This document shows, piece by piece, positions 7,975-44,945 of a stretch of DNA of 64,000 nucleotides (within the stretch, counting starts at the first letter, position 1; the number at the start of each line of letters is the position of its first letter). Origin of the DNA: Zygnema circumcarinatum SAG 698-1b. Lineage: Eukaryota > Plantae > Zygnematophyceae. Location: contig CM074815.1 in NCBI GenBank assembly GCA_037447605.1, positions 1,240,001 to 1,304,000 on the forward strand, read 5' to 3'. The translations under genes and the position numbers were made by a program. The notes beneath the pieces are model-generated. The model was given only the letters and a program-made list of their open reading frames with translations, was not told where the DNA came from and did not search any database.

Positions 7975-8251
7975 GTCCCCCGCCGGCAGCCAGTGTAGGC
8001 CTGAGGGAGCAGAGGAGGGCGAAGAGGACGGCTTACAGTGTTAGGTGAGGGGAGGCCATGGAGGCGGAGGCCATGGAGGCGGAGGCCATGGCGGCTGGGC
8101 GGAGGAGCGCGGGGAGGGAGGCGGCGGCGCCTTTTTAAATGTAAGCGCGCCGCGCCCGCCGCGGAGGGGAGGGCGGTCGGCCGCCCGAGGGCGACGTGGG
8201 CGCCGGACGGACCACTGTGCGCTTACTATGATTTCTTGCGGTAAGCGCACA
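7975..8251 (-). pseudogene. Third, truncated GH16 5' end: promoter plus signal-peptide fragment with a premature stop
   Basis: Reads MASASMASASMASPHLTL*AVLFALLCSLRPTLAAGGG, against copy [30 protein letters not shown] 15-bp unit is triplicated at 8051-8090. TAA at 8033-8035. TATA block and GTAAGCGCACA are retained. Confidence 0.8.
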
Positions 8252-8489
8252 ATCCCGTGCATATGCGGCGCGTTGATACGGAACTAAATAGCGCTCTGTC
8301 GTAAAACTGCCACCACAGGGAGCCCGTTGGGCCCTGCGGACACGGCGGGACGGGAATCGGCGGGCCGTACTGGAGTTAGTCATTGGAGCTGATCTGATGG
8401 CTGACTAGCTGTGGCTGGCCAGAATCTCGCTAATAGCCACGCGTGGCTGGAAATACTAAATGGCAATATTGGTTAATCATTTTCTGCTG

Positions 8490-11400
8490 ATGGCTAACCA
8501 AGTCGAACCTGCTAAGGGGGTGCTGCAGCAGGAGGTGAGGTGCTGCCTGCTTGGAGGGAAGGAGGAGGCAGGGGGGTGGGGGGCTGCAGGGCGCTCCCTT
8601 GTTGAGCAGCAGGGGAAGGGCAGATGTTGAATGTATGCTGGAGAAGGAAAGGAGGGAAGGAGTGAGGAAATGGAGAGAGCTTGCAGGCCGATCGCGCCTC
8701 CGAAGCTGCAGATTTCTGCAAGCTTGGTGGATGCCGTCCTGCTTTCTGCCAAAATATAATTCTCGCAGTTCTGGATGATGGCGTCGAATGCACAAGAACG
8801 GCGGGTTATGATCGTCTATGGTACAGTAATTTGCATCCAGAAATGCCAGGTTTCGTCAATACAGCTGCACTGCTTCAGTTTCATGCTGACAAGCAAGTGC
8901 ACAGATAGTGAAGGCGAAGCTATTGACGGTCAAGGAAAATCCTCACGTTTATTTCATTTGCAATTTCTTCTTCATATTCGAATCTACATAATGCATTGCC
9001 GGAGCCAACTCAACTCGACTTAGAAATCTGTAGATTCTGAAACTGACATGGCAGAATTCAAAGTATTGAGTGAAGACGTTCTTTTTCAATGGAAGGGATA
9101 TTGACTAAGACATCTAGCCCAAATGTGATTGACTTTGCTTTCGGCAACTGGTCATGAAATGTGCATCATTTGGTTCTCTCGGCGCAGATCCCAAAGGAAC
9201 TATTAGAACGACATCTGATACGCAAAGCAGTCCTGTGGTTCATCTCTGCCACCCAAAGACTGGTATGCATGTAATCTTCGGGCCTTGTTAATGAGTCAAA
9301 AGTGCCATGGCGAGGTCGTCGAGTAACGTCATGTTGTTTACATTGTTTGAATTGCGCTGACTTGTGCAAGGCGTTGTGAGACGTATTCACGCGAAGAGAC
9401 TTCCGACCAAATTTGTTTGTGCCAGCAGGCTGCCTTGTTTTGTAGGTTCAATTTGGCATTGTGGTTCTTCCTGGGACATGTTGATTGTTTCTCACTTATG
9501 CTTACTTGACGATGTGACGATGGCATCTCGTAAAATTTCAGCTTCAATCGTGTCATAGAGTAATGGAACCTGACAGCAGTTCTTGTGTGTTATGGTTGCA
9601 GGAGCTGCTGCATGCTATCTACTGCACGGTTCCTATTTGCAGGAGATTCATTGGTTTAAGAACAACCTGTCGTCATGGTTTGTCGGAGAGTCTGTTATTG
9701 AGGGTGAGTTGCCAATGCGAGGGCGATTTTGCGTTCTGTCTGGGAGCATGTTGGTTTCTTTGCTCGGTGGTTGTACAGCTCCAATATAAGTCTCCGTGAA
9801 CAATGCATGGCAAACATCCATGGTGACAAGGTGCCATCAAGTCCCGGGAGGTCGAATGTGAGATGAGACATTGATTTCAATTCCTTGGGACTATATCGTA
9901 TCGGCGCATTGATTGAATCAACTCCTAATTTGTTAAAGCACAAGGCTGCATATTCCACGCTCGCTTCGGTGACGGCTTGCCGCATTCCCTATAGCACATT
10001 GTTTAGAGCATTTGCTGAAAGCGCTGATTCATAGCTGTGTGCAGGGGCTGGTCAGATGGCAGCCTGTATTTGTCGTCTCCAGTGGACCCATTGTTCTTAA
10101 TAATCGGACCATTGGAGCGTGCTCGGATGAAGGTGCGATTCTGAATTTGATCGCAGACCTATGCTTCTCTGTTTCATAGGCCAAACATGTTTTTTCGGAT
10201 GTGCATTAAGCCACAGAAGTCTAGGAACCATCATATAATTGAAAACTTCAAAATATTTCTGGCATATGCGTGTATTCTGTACACACTCAGACCATTTCGT
10301 ACGTGGATGCACCTTGACCCTAGCATGCAGTACAAGTATGCAATTTTTCATACACTGGTAGACTGTAGCCTGTTGTTCTCAAAAAATGGCTCGTATCTCT
10401 TTTTTATGTTGCAGAAGGGTGATCATGAGGGCAATTATCGAACATTGGAGGACATACTTTCTGTCGATGGCTTTCCTGCATACGGAACTTTGCAGCCCCT
10501 GGTGGAAGACAGGCTGAAGCTCATCTGCTCGCTTAAAGGTGAGCTTCTACCACTGCAGCTTTGAGAAGTGAGAGAGGAAAGGTGAGAGCAGGTGAGAGAT
10601 TTGGAGAGGAAAGGGTAATGTATTGCTTGTGAATTGGAATGTGATGCAGAGTTAGGAGGGGAGATGTATTTTCGTATGGATGACAAACGGACCGTGGCTT
10701 GGCTCTGCTGCAAGGTGCTCATCGTCATCGCTCATTATCCCCTATGCTGCACAGATAGATGTATTTACATATAACTAACTTCTTTTTCCCATACGGGTGT
10801 TTAACTTCAAGGCTGATGAGCCAAGGAGCTCTTCACTTTCTGATGCAGGTAAATCAGACATGTGCAGCGCTCCGAAATCATGGAGGAAGGACAATGGCGT
10901 CAATTTCTGACCTTGATTTGAGTAAGTCATCTTGACCTCTACTTCCCAAAGATTGAGATGCAGACGTGGTGCCCATATACTGTTCTGCAGTGAATCGACG
11001 TATGTTTGTGGTAGGTGGAGTCCTCCCGTTCTGAAAAGGATTAGTTTTGGGTTTGCGGGCCTTTTGGCTTTCCAATGCATGCCTGAAGACTGCTCTGAGT
11101 CGCATTTGTTTCGAAGATGATCGTTTGGCTTCAAATGTCCCATTCCTGGAGGCTTATTCCCTTGCTGCTACTCTATTGGCGGCTCTATTGGCTGGCTGAA
11201 GCTGATCATAGGCTGGGGAGGCCGTTTGTAAACAGAGACTTATGCCGTGGGCATGCTCGGAGAGTATCTGTCTGACACGTGGCACAATCGGCTTTCCTCG
11301 CAGTTTGGGTAAGCTAAAAACCTCGACTTACACTTTTGCTTCTCTGACTTTTCAGATCCTGCGAAGGAGTTCGTGTGTTCGACAAGGCTGATCGGTAGGG

Positions 11401-34183: not shown

Positions 34184-37100
34184 ATGTCTGAAATGTCTGA
34201 GACTGGAGATTCAGGAGGAGGAGACACGGCTGGTGGTAAATCCATGGATGGAGTTACAACAAGTGGTATCAGAGCTTTCGGATCTGAGGACAGTGGGAAG
34301 ACCCACATCCAAATCTTCCGAGGCGGCACAAGTACAGAGTACAAGGAGTGGAGATGGGAGATGACCGCTCTACTCGAAACCAGGAAGCTGCTCCCGTATG
34401 TCGATGGTACCATCAAGCCACTCGACAAGAAGACAGCGCCTGCAGCCGATTTTGAAGCTTGGACTGAAAAGGATGCCAAATGTAGACACTTCTTCGCTGC
34501 AAGTATTAAAGGCAAGCCAGCTCACATGCTCATGCATCTGAAATCTGCTCGTGAGATGTGGGAGAAACTAGAGGCCACTTATGATCTAGTTGACATCACT
34601 GGAAGGTCAAATTTATATGATGAATTAGCAACCATTAAAATGACTTCAGATGAGACAACACTAGATTACTTGATGAGGTTTGGCAATCTAATGCAGAAGT
34701 TCACTATGCTGGACAAGGTTTTAGATGAGGATCACCAAATCAATGCATTTTTCAGAGGCCTGCCCAAACGTTTTGACGTCACTGTCAATGGCCTGCGGAC
34801 TCACCACTCCTTCTCTACACTCACGTTAGCCCATGCCATGGCCCGTATTAGAGAGGAGGACACATTTCAGAATGCATCCAGGCCAGGGGCAGATGGTGTC
34901 ATGGCAATGCGGCAGCAGAGCCTCCGAGAGCAGCGTGACCGAGGAGGACCTGACAATTTCTGCACTTACTGCAAGAGGAAGGGGCACATTGAAGCGGAGT
35001 GTCGGACCAAGAAGGCAGCCCAAGGCAGCGGGCAGCCTGACAGCGCAGAAGGCAAGGGGAAGGGCAAAACTGTCATCTGCTATAAGTGTGATCAGCCAGG
35101 TCACATTGCCAGGAACTGCACAGGCATAGCTGGAACAGAAGTAGCAGAGCCTGCACAGGTAGAGAGTAGTTTGATGGCTAGGGCTGCCAAGAGAATCGAT
35201 TATGTAAATCAAGTTTATCTTAATGACAAGAATCATTTACCGTGGCTCATTGACTCAGGGGCTTCCAAACACATGTGTAGTGACACCTCTCTCTTTGCAG
35301 AAATGCAGCCTTTGGCTGAGGCTAGATGTGTGTTTTCAGCAACAGGAGATCAAGTTGATGTCACTCATGGTGGAACTGTCCATTTTGCGCCTGTTGGAGA
35401 AGGCACACCTTTCCAACTCAGGCTTGGCAATGTCTTGCATACACCCACGTTACAAAACAATTTCTTTTCTGTTAGTCAGGTGTGTGGCAAAGGCTATGAA
35501 GGAATTTTCAGAGAAAATTCATGTAAAATTTTACATAGAAAAACTCGGAAAATTCTATGTAGAGGGACACAAAGGGACGGCCTGTACTACTTAGATTGGC
35601 AACCGTCGATTCAGGAGAAGGTCGCCGCTGCACGCGCCTCGGACGGCGCAGATGGTCGCGGTGGAGTCGCACGTGCCCAGGGCGTGCGTGACGGCCGCGA
35701 TCCTGCACGCGCCTCGGACGGCGCAGATGGTCGCGGTGGAGTCGCACGTGCCCAGGGCGCGCGCGACGGCCGCGATCCTGCACGCGCCTCGGACGGCGCA
35801 GATGGTCGCGGTGGAGTCGCACGTGCCCAGGGCGCGCGCGACGGCCGCGATCCTGCACGCGCCTCGGACGGCGCCGATGGTCGCGGTGGCGTCGCACGTG
35901 CCCAGGGCGCGAGCGACGGCCGCGATCCCGTCCGCGCTCTCGGACCATCGGACGGCCCTTGCAGCGTTGCAAGGCGCGCCGACCCGGATTGTAGTGACGT
36001 GACGCAGCGCCATGCTCCCATGGCACCAGAGGGCACGGGCGATCCCCCTCAGCGGCGCACAGGCTCCAGCTGCAATGGGGGCATAGAGTCTGCGCATCAA
36101 GTCTCTGATTCGGCGCAGCTTTGGCACAGGCGCCTTGGCCATCTATCGTACAGCGGTCTGGCGACCCTTGCTACCCAGAGCCTTGTGAGGGGGCTCCCCT
36201 TTACGAAACTCTCCAAGGTCGAAACTGTTTGTCCGGATTGTGCCGTGGGCAAGAGCCACCGTCACCCCTTCCGAAACCATGGCGTGGACTCTTTCCGCGC
36301 ATCCCAGCGGTTGGAACTAGTTCACAGCGACTTGTGTGGGCCAATCACCCCAATGACGCCCGGCGGTGCACGGTACTTCATAACCTTCCTTGATGACTTT
36401 TCTAGGAAGATTTGGGTTGTACTGCTGGCACATAAATCTGACGCCTTTGAGGCCTTTCAGGATTGGCAGCTCCAGGCCGAACGGCAGTCCGGTGAGAAAC
36501 TTCAGCGAATCCGGACGGATAATGGGGGAGAGTACAAATCCATCCAATTCTCTGACTATCTCAAGTCTTTGGGGATTCGTCATGAGTTCACAGCGCCATA
36601 CAGTCCCCAGAGCAATGGTGCAGCAGAAAGAGTGAATCGTACTCTTGGAGACATGGCGAGGTCCATGCTGAGTGAGTCCCCCTTCTCCTTGACCTTTTGG
36701 GGAGAGGCCATCCTCACAGCAGCCTATCTTCGGAACAGGTGTCCCTCTAACGCCTTGAAAGATGAAGGGCGAGTACCTGAAGAAATGTGGAGCGGCAGCA
36801 AGCCAACAGTTCAACACCTCAAAGTGTGGGGCTCCCAGTGCTGGACTACGATTCCCAAGGTGCAGCAGACTACCAAGTTTAGCCCAAGAGGAGAGTTTGG
36901 TTACTTCCTCGGCTACAATGATGATAGTCTGACCTACCGCGTGTGGAATCCCTCTACGAACAAGGTTATGACTACCCGAGATCTCCTTGTTGAGGAGACC
37001 ATCACGGAGGCAGATCAAGCGAGGATGCGGCACTTACCACTCCCAGACATCGAGTTCCTCCCTGTGAGGGACACTCTGGCAGATGAGGCGTTCCCACCAC

Positions 37101-39079
37101 CTCCACCTAGCCCTTTGGATGAAGAGTTTGCAGAGCAGTCTTCCATGGCTGAGCAGCCATTGTGGTCACAACCACTCTCGAATGAGCAGCAGCATAGCTC
37201 ATCAGAGCTCCCGGGGGAACTGCCTGATGAGCTTTCTGACGACCCTGATATGGGCCCTATGGAAGATGATGTACCTTTGGCACCGGCACCATCCGAGGTA
37301 CTGCCCACGGCTAGCCGTAGATGGGGTCCACACTCAGAGAAGAAGCAACGACCCGTCCGGGATACCAGAACCCCGGATTGGTATGGTGAGTGGAAGCGCT
37401 CCCCGTGGAAGAAGAAGGGCTCCAAAAGGCGACCTCCAGAAGAAGTTGAGGAGAGAGTTCCGTTGGACTCTGCTGACTTTGCAGGGATGGCCATTTGTCT
37501 CATGGCCCACGCCGAGGAGCCTCAAACATATTCCGCTGCATTGGAGGGCGCGGATGCAGGGAAGTGGAAGGAAGCCATTGATAGTGAGCTAAACAGCCTT
37601 AAGGAGAATGGAACGTGGCGGTTGGAGCCGCTGCCCCCAGGACGAAAAGCTATCGGCTGCAAGTGGGTATTCAAGGTCAAACGGAAGTCAGATGGGAGTG
37701 TTGACAGATTCAAGGCACGGTTAGTGGCCAAAGGGTTCTCACAGAAGTACGGCATAGACTATTCTGAGACCTTTGCACCCGTGGTCAAGTTTAACTCACT
37801 CCGAGCATTGATCTCTATCGCCGCTGAAGAAGGAATGCACGTCCACCAGTTGGACATCAAGACTGCTTTCCTCTATGGGGACCTCCAAGAAGAAATCTAC
37901 ATGCAGCAGCCTGAGGGGACTGTTGACAAAGGGAACAGACATCTTGTGTGCAGACTTGTTAAAAGCCTCTATGGGCTCAAACAAGCACCGAGGATCTGGT
38001 ACCAGAAGATTCATGACCTGTTGGTAGTGAACGGCTTCACTCGGTTCCATGCTGACCATTCAGTGTACAAGAAGGGGAAGGGAGGTGCCCAGCTGTTTGT
38101 AGGCATCTACGTTGATGACCTGATCATTGTGAGTGCCTCTTTGCCCAGTATTCAGGGTCTCAAAGACCTTCTACAACAGAATTTTCAGATGTCGGACCTC
38201 GGCCCTGCAGAATACCTCTTAGGCATCCAGCTTAAGAGGGGGAAGGATGGCAGTATGTTCCTCTGCCAGGAGAAGTACGCTAGAGAAGTTTTGGCGAAAT
38301 TCAATATGGAGACGTGCATCCCAAGCTCCACCCCCATGGACGCCAGCGTGAAGCTCAGCTGTGACATGAGCCCTCAGACTGAGGCAGAGACGAGAGAGAT
38401 GATAAAGATTCCATACCGATCTGCCATCGGGAGCTTGATGTACCTCATGGTGGGCACACGCCCTGATCTGGCCAAGGCCGTCAGCACTGCAAGTAGGTAC
38501 ATGGAAAATCCTGGGGTCAAGCATTGGGAGGCTGTCAAGAGGATCTTCAAGTACCTCAAGGGCACATCTCATTTCGGAATTCGGTTTGAGAGGGGGAGCG
38601 GCACTCCTGTGTATGGCTACACAGATGCTGATTGGGGCGGGGACCTCGATACTTCCAAATCCACTTCGGGCTATGCCTATCTCTATGCACGTGGGGTCAT
38701 TTCTTGGAGTTCGAAGTTGCAAGAGACAGTTGCTCTCTCGACCACCGAATCCGAATATGTGGCTGCTTGTCACGCCGCTCGGGAAGCCGTGTGGTTATCG
38801 TTATTCTTTGAGGAATGTGGGCGGCCCCAACTTCCCTTGCCGATTCTCACCGACAACCAGTCCTCCATTGCGCTTGTTGAGAATCCAGTGTTTCATCGGC
38901 GGAGCAAGCACATCAAGCTCCAATATCATTACACGCGGGAACTGGTGGAGGCGGGTGAGATCACAGTGTCCTTTGTCGAGACAGAAAACATGGCAGCGGA
39001 CATGCTTACAAAGGGGGTCAGCGGGCCCATCATGTGGAGGAATGGTCTTCTACTGGGGTTGGGTCCGTTTCGAGCCTAG
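34184..39079 (+). CDS. Copia gag-pol polyprotein, uninterrupted, 1631 aa
   Basis: Two CCHC knuckles, protease WLIDSGAS, integrase WHRRLGH...CPDC and RTDNGGEY, RT YVDD, RNase H KHIKLQYH, in copia order PR-IN-RT-RH. Confidence 0.97.
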   Translation: MSEMSETGDSGGGDTAGGKSMDGVTTSGIRAFGSEDSGKTHIQIFRGGTSTEYKEWRWEMTALLETRKLLPYVDGTIKPLDKKTAPAADFEAWTEKDAKCRHFFAASIKGKPAHMLMHLKSAREMWEKLEATYDLVDITGRSNLYDELATIKMTSDETTLDYLMRFGNLMQKFTMLDKVLDEDHQINAFFRGLPKRFDVTVNGLRTHHSFSTLTLAHAMARIREEDTFQNASRPGADGVMAMRQQSLREQRDRGGPDNFCTYCKRKGHIEAECRTKKAAQGSGQPDSAEGKGKGKTVICYKCDQPGHIARNCTGIAGTEVAEPAQVESSLMARAAKRIDYVNQVYLNDKNHLPWLIDSGASKHMCSDTSLFAEMQPLAEARCVFSATGDQVDVTHGGTVHFAPVGEGTPFQLRLGNVLHTPTLQNNFFSVSQVCGKGYEGIFRENSCKILHRKTRKILCRGTQRDGLYYLDWQPSIQEKVAAARASDGADGRGGVARAQGVRDGRDPARASDGADGRGGVARAQGARDGRDPARASDGADGRGGVARAQGARDGRDPARASDGADGRGGVARAQGASDGRDPVRALGPSDGPCSVARRADPDCSDVTQRHAPMAPEGTGDPPQRRTGSSCNGGIESAHQVSDSAQLWHRRLGHLSYSGLATLATQSLVRGLPFTKLSKVETVCPDCAVGKSHRHPFRNHGVDSFRASQRLELVHSDLCGPITPMTPGGARYFITFLDDFSRKIWVVLLAHKSDAFEAFQDWQLQAERQSGEKLQRIRTDNGGEYKSIQFSDYLKSLGIRHEFTAPYSPQSNGAAERVNRTLGDMARSMLSESPFSLTFWGEAILTAAYLRNRCPSNALKDEGRVPEEMWSGSKPTVQHLKVWGSQCWTTIPKVQQTTKFSPRGEFGYFLGYNDDSLTYRVWNPSTNKVMTTRDLLVEETITEADQARMRHLPLPDIEFLPVRDTLADEAFPPPPPSPLDEEFAEQSSMAEQPLWSQPLSNEQQHSSSELPGELPDELSDDPDMGPMEDDVPLAPAPSEVLPTASRRWGPHSEKKQRPVRDTRTPDWYGEWKRSPWKKKGSKRRPPEEVEERVPLDSADFAGMAICLMAHAEEPQTYSAALEGADAGKWKEAIDSELNSLKENGTWRLEPLPPGRKAIGCKWVFKVKRKSDGSVDRFKARLVAKGFSQKYGIDYSETFAPVVKFNSLRALISIAAEEGMHVHQLDIKTAFLYGDLQEEIYMQQPEGTVDKGNRHLVCRLVKSLYGLKQAPRIWYQKIHDLLVVNGFTRFHADHSVYKKGKGGAQLFVGIYVDDLIIVSASLPSIQGLKDLLQQNFQMSDLGPAEYLLGIQLKRGKDGSMFLCQEKYAREVLAKFNMETCIPSSTPMDASVKLSCDMSPQTEAETREMIKIPYRSAIGSLMYLMVGTRPDLAKAVSTASRYMENPGVKHWEAVKRIFKYLKGTSHFGIRFERGSGTPVYGYTDADWGGDLDTSKSTSGYAYLYARGVISWSSKLQETVALSTTESEYVAACHAAREAVWLSLFFEECGRPQLPLPILTDNQSSIALVENPVFHRRSKHIKLQYHYTRELVEAGEITVSFVETENMAADMLTKGVSGPIMWRNGLLLGLGPFRA
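35630..35929 (+). repeat. 75-bp GC-rich tandem repeat x4, in frame in pol (ARASDGADGRGGVARAQGxRDGRDP)
   Basis: Unit starts at 35630, 35705, 35780 and 35855. Confidence 0.95.
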
Positions 39080-41225
39080 GCCCCAAGAGGGGGAATGTTG
39101 TACAGCACTAGAGACTGACAACGTTTTGGGACATAGACTCTCTAGGGAGGTTAGATGCGCCTTGCAAGTGTTAGAGGCGCATGTGTACGAACGTCCGAAG
39201 ACACCGACCGCGCGTATGGCACGCACCGCACCACTTTTACCTGGTGTACGTAGTGTACGACAGCATAGATGTACAGGAGTGGCGCGCACGCCACGCATAG
39301 GAAGTCAGCCTCTCAAATCCCTCTCTGTCTCACTTACCCTTCAGAGCTTTGCCAGATGTTGGCTTGCAGCCAGGAGGTGCTTATGGGATATGTGTGGGTT
39401 AGTGCAAGGAGGGACAAGTAGTGTGGCACTGCTTTACATACCTTGTACTCATTCATTGAAAACAAGAGTTTTGGGCCGGCGGGGCTTTTCTCAATCTGTT
39501 GAGCTTGTCTTATGTCTGAAATGTCTGAGACAGGAGATTCAGGAGGAGGAGACACGGCTGGTGGTAAATCCATGGAAGGAGTTACAACAGATTTTACCCC
39601 TTCTTGTTTTTTTCAAAGAAAAAAATATCGGCCTGCCCGAATCCACTCGGAGCAGAAGATCCGTCCGCCACGACATCGTTCGCGGGTGGCCGTCCTTCAC
39701 ACGTGCAGACACTATACACCGTCGATTCTAGAGCAGATCACACCACGGCAGATCACCGTTCGATGGGCTCGGTTCCAGCGAATGGCACACGCCCACGTGT
39801 CCCACCCGAGCAGGCTCGAGGTCCGTACACATCTCGTACGGTCGCAGCTTCGAGGAAAGTCTAAATTCCTTACATTGCGAGCTTGAACCAATCATCATCT
39901 GCCGCGTGCTCTTTTTAAACGTGGCAAACTGTGATTGGTACAGGCACAACTTTAATTATTACGTTTTTTGACTTTCCTCGAAGCTGCGGGCGTACGCCTT
40001 TTGTACGGTCCTTGGAGCCGGCTTGGGTGGGACACGAGGGACAGAGCCCGGCTGCTGATCGAACGGTGATCTGCCTTGGTACGATCTGCGTAAATATCGA
40101 CGGCGGAAAAGTATTGCACGTGTAAAGGACGGCCACCCGCGAACGATCTCGTGGCGGACGGATCTTCCGCTCCGAGCGGATTCGAGCAGGCAGATTTTTT
40201 TTTCTCTGAAAATAAATGATAAGGAGTAAAATCTGCCCGACAGAAAAAGGTCTCACGGCGCTCGGCCGCTCAGGACTAGTAGCGTGTGTCGATTCCAAAA
40301 AGATGTGAAAAAAAAGGTGAAAAAAAAAAAGGTGTGAAAGGTGTGCTCCTTTTTTGTCTATTTTAAAATCTGCCCAGCGAAAAGAGGTCTGTGTGTAGAC
40401 AAAAAAGGTGTGAGAATAGAATTTTCCTTTTTTTTTTAGAGAAGCTCGGGTTGCGCCAATCAGAGTTGAGCTTGCCATTGCTGGCGTTGACTTTGACTTA
40501 TACCCGTGCCACATGTACCTAATCCAGTACAATAGAACGGTGTCAGGTCACGGCTACAGTACAGTACAGTACTGTAGACCAAGTTTACCGTACAGTACAG
40601 TACGGTAGGGCAGGTTGAAGAACGCTACTGTACAGCTCCCACAAATTTGGAGATCGTAGACATTGTATGCATTGTTCAGCCATGGGATGCTCATGCTTAT
40701 GTTATGCATATGCTTATGATGAAGGTGTTGCTGATGGTGCTGCCATCCCAAAAGAAGGCACTTCTGCGCACCCTAAGTCTAACAGCGATCACCATCGTGA
40801 GACCAATGCCACACCATTTCCTAACAGCGACTTTGTTCCTAGGGCCGTTGAGATTTCCGGCCGGCCTTTATCTCGTTCATGAGGAAATGGATTTGGCATA
40901 GATAAGTTCAGAAGTCATTTGCGACCGGTTCACAATACATGTTCGGTCCACGTATTGCCCTTGTCCATGTACATTTGATGGCATCGCCATGCGCGAGATC
41001 AATGCCACATCCTTTTCCGTTGCCCACTATCTGTACTGACTCGCCATCTTGAGATCAATGCCGGTTCGCCTTTTCCCAAAAAGTAATTATTTGCAGCCAA
41101 GCCAGGCATTCTTTCTCCTGAGGCCCTAATTTTCTGTTTGCTCTTTTTAGGTCTGGCAGGAGCTTCGGGCTGCCAGCGCCAGAGCCAGCGCCTGGGCGAG
41201 GGCCACGGCTGGGGCAGGAGGCGAG

Positions 41226-41423
41226 ATGCTGCGCAGGAAGCCTTCTCGCTTGGAGCTCCGTCCGGAAGACAGAGACGACTATCTGGAGGCGCGCCACGTG
41301 GCAGCCATGGCTACGCCTCCCACCGGGCCTTCCTCTCTTCACCCTCCTGCCTCTGCAACGGACGAGCTTCTCAAGGACAGAAGCAAGCTCTCTGCAACAC
41401 AGCGTATTGCCACGACTAAGTGA
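41226..41423 (+). CDS. CDC26: Anaphase-promoting complex subunit CDC26 (APC12), 65 aa, intronless
   Basis: MLRRKPSRLELRPEDRDDYLE matches the conserved CDC26 N-terminus (MLRRKP-x-x-(I/L)-x-L-x-x-(E/D)-D), followed by a low-complexity tail. Length is typical. A strong splice acceptor at 41150 suggests a 5' UTR intron. Confidence 0.9.
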   Translation: MLRRKPSRLELRPEDRDDYLEARHVAAMATPPTGPSSLHPPASATDELLKDRSKLSATQRIATTK

Positions 41424-41949
41424 TCCTATGTAGACTTTTTTAGGTCGGGATAGCTGGGAGCAGCTCGTATTTCTTAACCGTGTAGTCGGACATCCTGGAT
41501 CATAGTCGTGTACGTGATTGAGATAATTCGGCCGCAACATTTGTTCTCCTGCTAATTCCCCAATTTGAAGAGCCTTCTTGATTTTTCAAGACGTGCTTGT
41601 AACGACCCTCTGGATTTAAACGAACGGTACTATCTGCGAGGACGCTGAACGATAGGAACCCTTTTTCGTCTTGCCTGCCCCATGGCCTATTTGCAGCTGT
41701 GAAAAAATCCTACATTGCGCAGCGGAAGGTTCTCTTGCGGCTCTAAATAAGTGGGCTATCCTGTTCGGTCTGTCGCTTAAAAAAAGCACAGCTTTAGTTC
41801 GCAAGCTGTATTACGAGACCGACGGGATTCTGTTGAAGCGCTTTGTGAAGATAAATTTGTCAGCGTTATATCGGTCCTCTTCTCTCGCTCTACTTGGAGC
41901 AACTGCGGCTGCATTCTGAAGCTTCGAAACAGTATTGACTGTGCTGGTC

Positions 41950-44945
41950 ATGGCTACCAAGGAAGATGTGGAGGATGATGATGACGATTTCTTCGCGGAG
42001 GTCTATGGGCGAGAATATTCTGGCCCCGCTGCAGGCCGTGATAGCACCCGTATGGCATCTCAGAATCAGGAGAGTACTATATCCAGGGTTCGAGAAAACT
42101 CAGAGGAACGGGAAACTCCTCGTGATCCCAATGAGCTGCCCACGGACTTCACAACTCGTGAGGCGAAATTGTGGGATGCCAAGGCGAAGGCCATGGAGCG
42201 AAATTGGAAGCGGCGAAGAGAGGAGGAGCTTACTTGTCGCATTTGCGGAGAGATGGGACACTTTGCACAGGTGAAGCACTACACTTTACTCCTCTTCGTC
42301 TCTAAGGTAGAGGCATGCATAACAGTTGTTTCATTCCTTGCACCACATTGTAGGGATGATGCACACAATTGGTTAGAGCATTGACAACAGATCTTTCTCG
42401 TAACGGGGAAATTGCTCTTTCGGGATTAGATTCTTAGGATCCTTAGATTGGATAAAGTCTTTGTTCATGAATAGGCAGCTGTTGCTAACTCCATTTTCTC
42501 GTCATTCTGCTACTTCTCCCTTCCTAAGTCAAATAAAGATTCAGGTGTATTGTGCCTTGAATTGTAGTCGTGGTCAAGAGGCCAGGTGACAGCTGTCGTT
42601 TGGAATGCTTCTTGGTCATTCATGCCCGTTGCTCTTATTTGTGAAACTGACCCAGTTGTACCAGCAGCTGCACCGATGTATGGAACAAGTCACAGAACAG
42701 TTAGTTGCTGGGAACCAAAAGCGTTTCGGTTCCGAATGGCAATTGGCAGAACATTCTCAAAGATTAGAATCCTATTTTCATCAAGGCCTAGTTCTTGAAT
42801 CCCCCAATCCGGACAAAATTGCCTAGAGAAATATAGGCTGTGCTTTCCTTATCCTGTAGGCTTCCTGTATCACTCTCCTGACTCGTGCCTCCCGCATGGG
42901 TTCAGGGTTGCCCTACCACTCTGGGTGGAGGTGCACGGCCGGGCGAGCATGTGCAGAGGATGGCCATCAAGGATCGACGCATGAAGCCGCGCTTAATAGG
43001 GACAGGTGGTTCTGTTATTCAAGGTATAGAAAAAAGCTCAGGATGCCGCATTAAGTTGGAGGACAATCTGGTGGCTGGAGATGGGTCATTTACAGTGCAC
43101 ATAACTGGCTCCAATGAGGAGAAAGTGAAGAAGGCACAGGATGCAGTGAATTCCATATTAAAGCAAGTCGAAGAAGAGTGGCAGAAGCAGGCGCAGCGCA
43201 AAGTGGCTGGAGGAGTTGGCGGAAAAGTACAAGTAGAGCACAGGGTTGTGCCCGTAAGCCCTTCTCCAGGCAGGCCGGGACAACCACGCCCAGCTTCAGA
43301 GGTTGTAAGAGGAGACGCCTACCATTCTCCCAGCCCTCTCCTTCCAGTGGGGCCAAGGCCTCTAGCAGCAGTTCCACGGAGCGGTGCAGCTTACTTGAAA
43401 CCCGATTCCCATATGACAGAGCAAATCGCAGCCCATCTCGAACTACGTCGTAAATGGGAATCTGCAGGAGCTGCCACGAGGGTCGGGTTTGCCGCTCCTC
43501 CGTATTCGTCAGCTGCTCCTCCCGCTCCCTACGATGAAAGTGAGCCTGCTTTGACCACTCACGCAGCAGCCAAAATGGACCATTGTATGATTGCTCCTCT
43601 TGAGTTTTCTTTTGTGTCAATTCCTAACCCAGAATAGTGCTCTTGCTGCAGCTTCAGTCAGAGCTTCAGGAGCCTACGATGCCCCTCTCGCTGCGAGGGA
43701 GACCCCACAGGCCAATAGCCTCTACTATTCCCAAGAGGTGCAGGGAGGGGAGTCCAACGCTTATGGTGAAGCTGCAACTAGTAGTGCTCATGGGGATTCT
43801 GCTGTTCTTCGGTCCAGCTCCCAGGCAGGAGCAAGTGCAGGGGAGGAGGATATGGAAGTCGGTTATGATGACAGTGGGAGTGTTAGCAATGCCGTTGGAG
43901 CAGAGTCTTTGGAGGATCTTGAGCAGCAGTTTCTTGAGCAGACAATGGCACTGACACGAGCTCAGACTGCTGAGGAGAATGCAGAGCATGCAAGGCACAA
44001 GCAGGTGGGGATAGCCGGGAATTTCATTTGCTTGGCAGTCTCAAAGCTGTATTGGGGATAGTGCCAAAGCAGGAGCAAATGGGGTTCGGAACAGCCACCG
44101 TAAGGCGCACCTAGTGATGTGAGACGAAGTTGAATACTGTCTGACTAACATCTGTTCGGTTGGAGATGCAGCGAATGGTGGAGATTGGCGAAGTATACCA
44201 GAAAAGAATGGCCACTTTACGCGCAGAGCAGACAGACCGGCGGCAAGCCTTCCTGCAGAGGCACTCCAAAGGTGGGCAGGGGCAGCAGGCCGCCTTCTCT
44301 CCCTACCACTACTCCCCACATAGCGGCTCCGTGCCCCCTTCAGGGCCTCCCTCTGGTCACCAGCAGCAGGCTGCCGATGCAGTCGCTCCTTTGTATGGAG
44401 CCAGTTCCATGCCTCCGCTATATGCAAGCCGAGCTGGGGAAAGCACTGCAAGGTCGCCGATAGGTGGGAGCAGCGGAGCAGCCGCTGAGAGAGCCACATA
44501 TTCAGGGCATCGGCAGGGCGATGGGGCGGGGTTTTCTGCCTATTCAGGTATTGAGAATGGCACGTATTCATCGTCGCACAGCAACCCGGAAGCTGGAGGG
44601 TTAAGTATGCCTCAGACTCTCCAGCATCACACCGGGGCCTCATATGAGCCTGCCCTTGACAGAGGACACCTACCTCCTTCAAAAGCACCACTGCAGGCAC
44701 AGACCTACGGCGAGACCAAGTTGAGCTATACTGCAGCTGTGGGAACCACCTTTACTCAGACTGAAAAGGCATACAAGCAGGGAGAACCTGATACCGGATA
44801 TGAAATTAATGCTCAGGAGGTCTACAGCCAAGCAGAGCCATACACTACGGCTTCAGCTGCTTATGCTCTCCAACCACCAATTTTTAATTCTGCAGTGGGG
44901 TCAAGTGATAAAGATGGCTTCTCTAATTACAGACTGCAAGGGTAG
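41950..44945 (+). CDS. CCHC zinc-knuckle plus KH-domain protein with a coiled-coil region (plant uncharacterised family), multi-exon
   Basis: RDPNELPTDFTTREAKLWDAKAKAMERNWKRRREEELTCRICGEMGHFAQ|GCPTTLG, KH motif LIGTGGSVIQGIEKSSGCRIKL, and ESLEDLEQQFLEQTMAL...ENAEHARHK. Confidence 0.82.

Follow-up and report, generated by a model that had tools for sequence, protein, structure and literature searches.

CDC26 with a CCHC zinc-knuckle/KH gene in place of TTM3: a probable dicistronic unit with a new partner in Zygnema circumcarinatum

CDC26 is a small subunit of the anaphase-promoting complex/cyclosome (APC/C), the N-terminus of which binds APC6/CDC16. For the pairing of its gene with that of TTM3, the sole rationale that has been proposed is that translating the second open reading frame (ORF) helps the expression of the tiny first one, and we know of no biochemical link between the two proteins. 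The Arabidopsis CDC26/TTM3 locus was reportedly described as dicistronic by Lorenzo-Orts et al. in 2019. Later papers place this locus (At2g11890) in homology group 30 of the conserved peptide upstream ORFs (CPuORFs) (PMC7943633, PMC6973038 and PMC11892635; first flagged in PMC3426882), and PMC11892635 describes the dicistron as conserved from green algae to angiosperms and reports nonsense-mediated decay (NMD) and polysome effects for it. Here we describe a CDC26 locus in 64,000 nt of Zygnema circumcarinatum SAG 698-1b (assembly GCA_037447605.1, contig CM074815.1, positions 1,240,001–1,304,000 of the forward strand; this whole stretch is called the window, and window coordinates are used throughout), in which CDC26 probably occupies the 5′ position of a dicistronic unit and is followed there by a CCHC zinc-knuckle/KH gene and not by TTM3. 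CDC26 dicistrons as such are known; CCHC/KH instead of TTM3 would be a new partner.

The likeness to the Arabidopsis locus lies in a 65-aa CDC26 as first cistron of what would be a capped nuclear mRNA, in a longer unrelated ORF as second cistron, in a CDC26 stop codon upstream of introns, with NMD sensitivity expected, and in an arrangement that is kept between species. It differs in that the second cistron encodes a CCHC/KH RNA-binding protein and not a CYTH polyphosphatase, and in that the arrangement is seen in two species so far. The spacer is also longer, approx. 0.5 kb, compared with 73 nt in Riccia and 15 nt or an overlap in the TTM3-linked metagenome contigs L026 and L033.

Two further systems offer a comparison. 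Chlorophyte bicistronic genes use leaky scanning (Gallaher et al. 2021, PMC7896298; Duenas et al. 2025, PMC11892635), and extra AUGs between their ORFs cut the output of ORF 2 (PMC11892635). The Zygnema locus resembles them in its small ORF 1, its short ATG-free leader, the few ATGs before ORF 2, the stronger Kozak context at ORF 2 and collinearity across species; it differs in belonging to a streptophyte, in a much longer inter-ORF distance and in a purine at position −3 of ORF 1, and leaky scanning is a mechanism that we infer here. In CPuORF homology group 8, which encodes a twin-CX9C protein, the main ORFs are reported to differ between taxa (PMC3426882), which makes it the closest precedent: a conserved small protein stays the 5′ cistron while the downstream partner changes by lineage, as we propose for our locus. 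The protein family is another one. Our literature searches returned no CDC26 with another partner in the green lineage and no polycistronic transcripts in Zygnema.

The ORF in question, at 41226–41423 on the forward strand, starts with ATG, ends with TGA and encodes a 65-aa CDC26 whose N-terminus reads MLRRKPSRLELRPEDRDDY. At Met1 it carries the CDC26-defining motif MLRRKP(T/S)(R/K)(I/L)E(L/V), the APC6/CDC16-binding segment, in the form MLRRKPSRLEL (residues 1–11), which a six-frame motif scan found once in the 64-kb window. Aligned Met1 to Met1 with human CDC26 (PDB 3HYM/4UI9), a protein of similarly small size, it is identical at ten of residues 1–11 and at 12 of residues 1–23; animal and fungal CDC26 genes, in contrast, stand alone. 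The single close relative in a word-index search was P0001, a 68-aa protein (57% identity, 100% coverage, E=1.4e-12) with a precomputed match to the Pfam family ANAPC_CDC26 (PF10471) that is marked weak. A profile built from these two proteins and searched against 1.84 billion representative proteins recovered 34 small proteins with the same N-terminal motif, including ones from Diphasiastrum, Riccia and Ceratopteris and ones from Cymbomonas and Seminavis that are named CDC26 in UniRef. In the two database-wide searches P0001 was the sole CDC26-like protein close to that of the window, and it is likewise linked to a KH gene.

In an alignment of 18 sequences, the invariant residues M1, L2, R4, P6, E10 and D15 are all present in the window protein, as is the C-terminal QRI motif common to CDC26 of plants and other eukaryotes; the longer (Q/E/H)RIG(L/Y/F) of plant, algal and animal CDC26 reads TQRIATTK in the window, with A for the usual G, and AQRIGASK in P0001. 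The window and P0001 genes specify the same residue at 39 of 64 aligned codons, with a non-synonymous divergence (dN) of 0.24 and a saturated synonymous divergence (dS), and in codons 1–15 there are nine synonymous and no non-synonymous changes. Because of these relatives, the invariant residues and the purely synonymous changes in codons 1–15, the ORF is, as judged from its sequence, a real and conserved CDC26 that is probably translated and functional. An earlier note, made from the letters of this DNA alone, had called it a clear 65-aa CDC26 that gene predictors could easily miss; the motif, P0001 and the codon changes bear out the identification, and it fits the second remark that an exact look-up in the assembly collection found no gene on record with exactly this 65-aa product.

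The next coding sequence on the same strand starts with the ATG at 41950, exactly 526 nt past the CDC26 stop, and encodes a CCHC knuckle and, after it, one KH_1 domain, the combination of a CX2CX4HX4C knuckle with a single KH_1 by which the family is recognized. We compared the exons of this gene one by one, and for full-length searches we used the contiguous orthologous ORF of a second species (L001:818-2851, encoding protein P0002). Orthologues of P0002 were found in liverworts (Marchantia and Riccia), a moss (Physcomitrium), a lycophyte (Selaginella), a fern (Adiantum), Ginkgo and a zygnematophyte (Mesotaenium), and on these matches the CCHC/KH family is widespread in streptophytes. None of the matched entries carries a functional name, the only label being ‘CCHC-type domain-containing protein’. 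In a tree of the family the L001 protein lies outside the clade of mosses, liverworts and vascular plants, with no finer placement.

A CDC26-TTM3 dicistron (CPuORF homology group 30) has a CYTH ORF directly 3′ of CDC26; in the window that place is taken by the CCHC and KH_1 domains. A tblastn search with full-length Riccia TTM3 (from L008) gave no match better than E=0.74 in the 64-kb window, none in the spacer at 41424–41949 and none in the second-species contigs L001–L004 described below, whereas Riccia L008 itself, the positive control, shows CDC26 followed by CYTH. TTM3 is 56–89% identical from Klebsormidium and Chara to angiosperms and is also present in Closterium; because it is so well conserved, a copy in the window would have been seen. 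A TTM3 exon, whether between the two ORFs or at another place in the 64 kb, was likewise rejected: both Riccia TTM3 and a TTM3 fragment (P0025:53-138) gave only noise in tblastn, and the RNA contigs show no splicing inside 41151–42270. An 82-aa ORF with a TTG start at 41671–41919 found no support. The earlier note had reported the CCHC/KH gene as the next ORF on the same strand, 526 bp past the stop, with no TTM3/CYTH-like ORF downstream, and had named a TTM3 exon in 41424–41949 as a finding that would overturn its reading; the ATG at 41950 and the searches above agree with it on each count.

Nine sequencing runs of one organism were listed, six of which (from three studies) hold 58–69% of the sequence words of the stretch, and contigs of four runs (X1, X2, X4 and X5; three studies) were placed on 5,901 letters of it. 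Because the contigs of all four runs carry canonical GT..AG joints at the KH introns, they derive from RNA. They tile without a gap from 40982 or 41151 to 42267, so that leader, CDC26 ORF, spacer and first KH exon are all covered: one X5 record spans 40982–41593 and another 41564–42267, continuing over the joint of KH intron 1, and an X4 record spans 41151–41767, with a GT..AG joint from 40796 ahead of it. The depth of X1 is 120–227 and flat over CDC26, spacer and KH exon 1, and falls to 3.5–7 in KH intron 1. The 526-nt inter-ORF spacer (41424–41949, forward strand) is transcribed at exon-level depth and unspliced, and fusion of CDC26 with KH through splicing was rejected, as no such joint occurs in the contigs. 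What emerges is one transcribed stretch in which a short 5′ exon is followed by a 354-nt leader intron, an ATG-free leader, CDC26, the unspliced spacer and then the coding exons of KH; the contigs are strong evidence for one transcribed stretch, short of proof of one mRNA.

The same arrangement is present in a second species. P0001 is encoded on the Logan contigs L001–L004 (3.1–3.3 kb; runs SRR8128902, SRR8128905, SRR8128906 and SRR8128908). On each of them CDC26 lies close to the 5′ end, 572 nt of spacer follow, and a 2,037-nt ORF without introns then encodes the 678-aa KH protein P0002. This protein is 78–81% identical with the window gene in exon 1, 64% in exon 2 and more weakly similar in exons 3 and 4 (35–49%), and the contiguous L001 cDNA reads ...CRICGEVGHFAQGCPTT... 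straight across the first KH splice junction of the window. The 526-nt spacer of the window and that of L001 have no similarity (41% identity, compared with 46% for a shuffled control). Order, strand and spacing (526 and 572 nt) have thus been kept although dS is saturated and the spacers are unalignable, and L001–L004 show both conserved ORFs collinear in a diverged species. Conservation of a structured RNA or of an element resembling an internal ribosome entry site in the spacer was considered and rejected, the spacers of the two species being without similarity.

Both spacers are poor in ATG. That of the window holds two, compared with 7.5 expected from dinucleotide shuffles (P=0.008), which open ORFs of 1 and 6 codons; that of L001 holds three, compared with 6.6 expected (P=0.06), which open ORFs of 4, 11 and 17 codons and all lie within 60 nt of the CDC26 stop. 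The leaders 5′ of CDC26 contain no ATG in either species, and AATAAA is absent from the 526-nt spacer. Were the spacer just a 3′ untranslated region (UTR) or a promoter, ATG poverty would have no obvious purpose. Position −3 is G and position +4 is C at the CDC26 AUG, both are G at the KH AUG, and the window shows an AUG-poor leader and inter-ORF region together with a good Kozak context at ORF 2. On such an mRNA 40S subunits would load at the cap and most would initiate at the CDC26 AUG; ribosomes that bypass this AUG through leakiness, or that go back to scanning once they have terminated, would arrive at the KH AUG. This route could work because only three ATGs intervene, namely the in-frame Met28 and the two that open the 1- and 6-codon ORFs. 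Because the CDC26 stop lies upstream of three introns, the mRNA should be NMD-sensitive unless the KH ORF is translated, a behaviour reported for CDC26/TTM3 of Arabidopsis. In evolutionary terms, the ancestral CDC26-TTM3 pairing of the green lineage would have been broken in this lineage and CDC26 re-housed in the KH leader.

Other lineages show how far the two pairings extend. Riccia fluitans (L008) has the canonical pair, with CDC26 at 8001–8273, 73 nt and then the CYTH gene at 8347–8943, and its KH orthologue lies elsewhere in the genome, on a separate contig from CDC26; at the KH locus of Marchantia paleacea we found no CDC26 within 6 kb upstream. The KH pairing is therefore no general feature of land plants. 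Among 70 CDC26 loci in a metagenome scan, 12 had a clear TTM3 downstream, six more (moss-like) had a divergent CYTH-like ORF and none had a KH partner. The TTM3 gene of the zygnematophyte Closterium sp. NIES-68 has no CDC26 within 8 kb upstream, and in L009, a KH transcript that is zygnematophyte-like, no CDC26 is present in the 270-nt leader. A CDC26 contig of the same accession series as L009, L082, has neither KH nor TTM3 in its 984 nt downstream. The context of L082 and L083 is uninformative, as is that of the CDC26 genes of Diphasiastrum (L006), which has a retrotransposon downstream, and of L007, which has no ORF downstream. It would seem that only the lineage to which the window organism and the L001 species belong has the KH pairing, and within the Zygnematophyceae the TTM3 pairing may have been lost more widely. 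Two side observations concern these loci. Approx. 170 nt upstream of the CDC26-TTM3 pair of Riccia a divergent gene (L008:4904-7827, minus strand) encodes a 636-aa ANAPC3/TPR-repeat protein, an APC/C-type subunit, and the Closterium TTM3 model (L010/L011:8001-12862) has a 104-aa N-terminal extension that resembles a targeting peptide.

Several observations weigh against a single dicistronic mRNA with CDC26 in first place. The RNA evidence consists of assembled contigs, which can merge overlapping transcripts of the same strand and show no starts, ends or single molecules. Depth climbs approx. 2–3-fold from CDC26 to KH exon 1 in X2 (24 to 91), X4 (28 to 74) and X5 (31 to 70), which would fit extra KH-only transcripts starting in the spacer. 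The purine at −3 makes leakiness of the CDC26 AUG not obvious, the chlorophyte bicistrons that have been studied are shorter in ORF 1 and spacer than the 65 codons and 526 nt seen here, and ATG depletion in L001 by itself reaches only P=0.06. In addition, PF10471 matches the ORF at residues 1–23 with E=0.0037 and 18.5 bits, which misses the 24.5-bit gathering threshold. A score of this size is expected because only approx. 23 residues can match the model, and we take it to reflect how short the family model is, not as a ground for excluding CDC26.

The alternative that survives best, although we regard it as unlikely, is that two independent, overlapping mRNAs are made: a monocistronic CDC26 mRNA with a long 3′ UTR and a KH mRNA from a promoter inside the 526-nt spacer, which the contigs would merge. 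A contig across two genes indeed shows no single transcript, and the climb in depth over the spacer that X2, X4 and X5 show would be accounted for. The leader of L009 also indicates that a KH gene can work without an upstream CDC26, and L082 shows the CDC26 of another species without a partner ORF in the 984 nt that follow it. Against this, two species so diverged that synonymous sites are saturated and spacers cannot be aligned have kept the order and the spacing (526 and 572 nt), both spacers are ATG-poor, the depth of X1 is flat across the region, and the spacer contigs have no reported depth gap or poly(A)-type loose end, with AATAAA absent. The earlier note had left the choice between a monocistronic CDC26 and one with a new bicistronic partner; the continuous contigs, the contigs of the second species and the ATG-poor spacers lead us to favour the new partner.

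It is rather improbable that the window holds a secondary CDC26 copy, with a working CDC26 still upstream of TTM3 elsewhere and the copy in the KH leader acting mainly as a repressive upstream ORF. TTM3 is highly conserved in streptophytes, so the organism very probably has one, and 64 kb of its genome were examined. However, comparison of two deeply diverged species shows strong purifying selection on the peptide, the TTM3 of Closterium has no CDC26 within 8 kb upstream, and the sole close CDC26-like protein in two database-wide searches, P0001, is also KH-linked. Finally, that the 65-aa ORF is a chance ORF with a CDC26-like start and no gene at all, for which one could cite the Pfam E value and PDB matches that, taken alone, are weak (E=0.13–0.9), is effectively refuted by the full-length orthologue P0001, by the motif codons with their synonymous changes only, by the 18-sequence alignment with its shared C-terminal QRI and by the transcription of the ORF.

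If CDC26 is the first cistron of a dicistronic unit with KH, as we think probable, a lineage in which TTM3 was dropped and CDC26 kept as 5′ cistron amounts to a natural swap experiment. Such a partner swap argues that selection acts on the dicistronic context itself and not on TTM3, and the interest of the KH pairing would lie in the reason for which CDC26 is carried as a 5′ cistron in the first place. It points to a general rule, open to testing, for essential proteins that are small and have their ORFs in leaders, and it provides a concrete annotation case in which an essential cell-cycle gene is left out by gene predictors.

Further CDC26 neighbours were seen in our collections. In a GC-rich organism (Logan, SRR28580343, L084:180-1556) a 78-aa CDC26 with a PF10471 match is followed, after a 138-nt ATG-free spacer, by a non-TTM3 ORF of at least 334 aa with a transit-peptide-like N-terminus and a CBM_48 domain, which resembles a starch-branching enzyme. 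One marine lineage contributes 18 contigs, from metagenomes and metatranscriptomes (L012–L019, L024, L025, L027–L029, L031, L035, L039, L042 and L056), in which a 46–53-aa CDC26 is followed by a 350–387-aa LRR_6 protein, the two overlapping or lying up to approx. 150 nt apart; many of these contigs are 1.0–1.8 kb long with CDC26 at the 5′ end, and the pair may be a further dicistron. At 17 loci (L020, L023, L034, L040, L043, L044, L046, L047, L054, L057–L062, L069 and L070) the first exon of CDC26 (MLRRQPSRIELKPEDKDEV, with an apparent intron after it) is found immediately 5′ of a guanylate kinase gene, an adjacency that may be trivial, these being large contigs of compact genomes. In L021 an SLC35F transporter gene follows CDC26 after 111 nt. 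Animal-like CDC26 loci in the metagenome sample have no close downstream ORF.

It is possible, and we suggest it tentatively, that CDC26 is a habitual ‘passenger’ cistron that needs some downstream ORF, e.g. for NMD escape or polysome entry, with the partner interchangeable and CDC26 re-housed repeatedly. The passenger cases would seem to comprise TTM3 in most green plants, CCHC/KH, the starch-branching-enzyme-like ORF of L084, LRR, SLC35F and possibly guanylate kinase. As unverified leads, the starch-branching-enzyme-like, LRR and SLC35F partners, and perhaps guanylate kinase, point the same way as the KH swap.

The structure of the transcribed stretch, all on the forward strand, is as follows. 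The X4 contig contains 48 nt of the non-coding first exon (40749–40796), which are the 3′ part of this exon in the 5′ UTR and include no ATG. The 354-nt 5′-UTR intron at 40797–41150 (joint 40796>41151) has a donor reading C/GTGAG and an acceptor with a pyrimidine tract and then AG, and it is kept in some contigs, those of X2 and X5 being unspliced from 40982/40983. The ATG-free CDC26 leader within exon 2 occupies 41151–41225 and precedes the first cistron. KH coding exon 1 (41950–42270, 107 codons, the part 78–81% identical to P0002) ends within the CCHC knuckle, and exon 2 (42906–43539) completes the CX2CX4HX4C knuckle and carries the KH_1 domain (E=3.4e-12). Split by KH intron 1, the knuckle reads C-RI-C-GEMG-H-FAQG-C, and zf-CCHC reaches E=0.001 on exon 1 alone. 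The end of exon 3 (43652–44004) holds part of a conserved helical segment, with the tblastn matches of most orthologues at 43843–44004, and exon 4 (44172–44945) is the last and ends with the stop TAG at 44943–44945. The three KH introns are 42271–42905, 43540–43651 and 44005–44171, with joints in all four runs; as read directly from the contigs the joints are 42267>42903 (cut +3), 43539>43652 and 44000>44168 (cut +4). The KH 3′ UTR, from 44946 on, is covered by contigs to 45379 in X1 and to 45813 in X2.

Some minor features of the region were also noted. A low-depth X1 contig over 42242–42628, which covers KH intron 1, has 17 substitutions and a 1-nt deletion, and this suggests that the locus has a diverged allele or a second copy in which the intron is kept. 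From 46282 onward, just downstream of the KH 3′ region, there is a run of C and then an assembly gap of N, with 50 N in the window in total. Inside the leader intron of CDC26, the stretch 40788–41087 has a contig depth of 800–2,700×; it is bounded by 24-nt direct repeats (40796–40819 and 40992–41015), some contigs join its end back to its start, and it looks like one unit of a repeat of approx. 196 nt, tandem or dispersed, that is abundant in RNA elsewhere. A search of Rfam gave a sub-threshold microRNA at 40552–40608 as its sole match, and at 40555–40616 there are two tandem 31-nt units rich in TACAGTAC, which also form a hairpin-like inverted repeat. Approx. 1.7 kb upstream of the CDC26 unit lies an unbroken ORF (34184–39079, forward strand) for a 1,631-aa polyprotein of the Ty1/copia type, assigned by its CCHC knuckles and by motifs typical of integrase and reverse transcriptase, and the start of this ORF is repeated at 39512.

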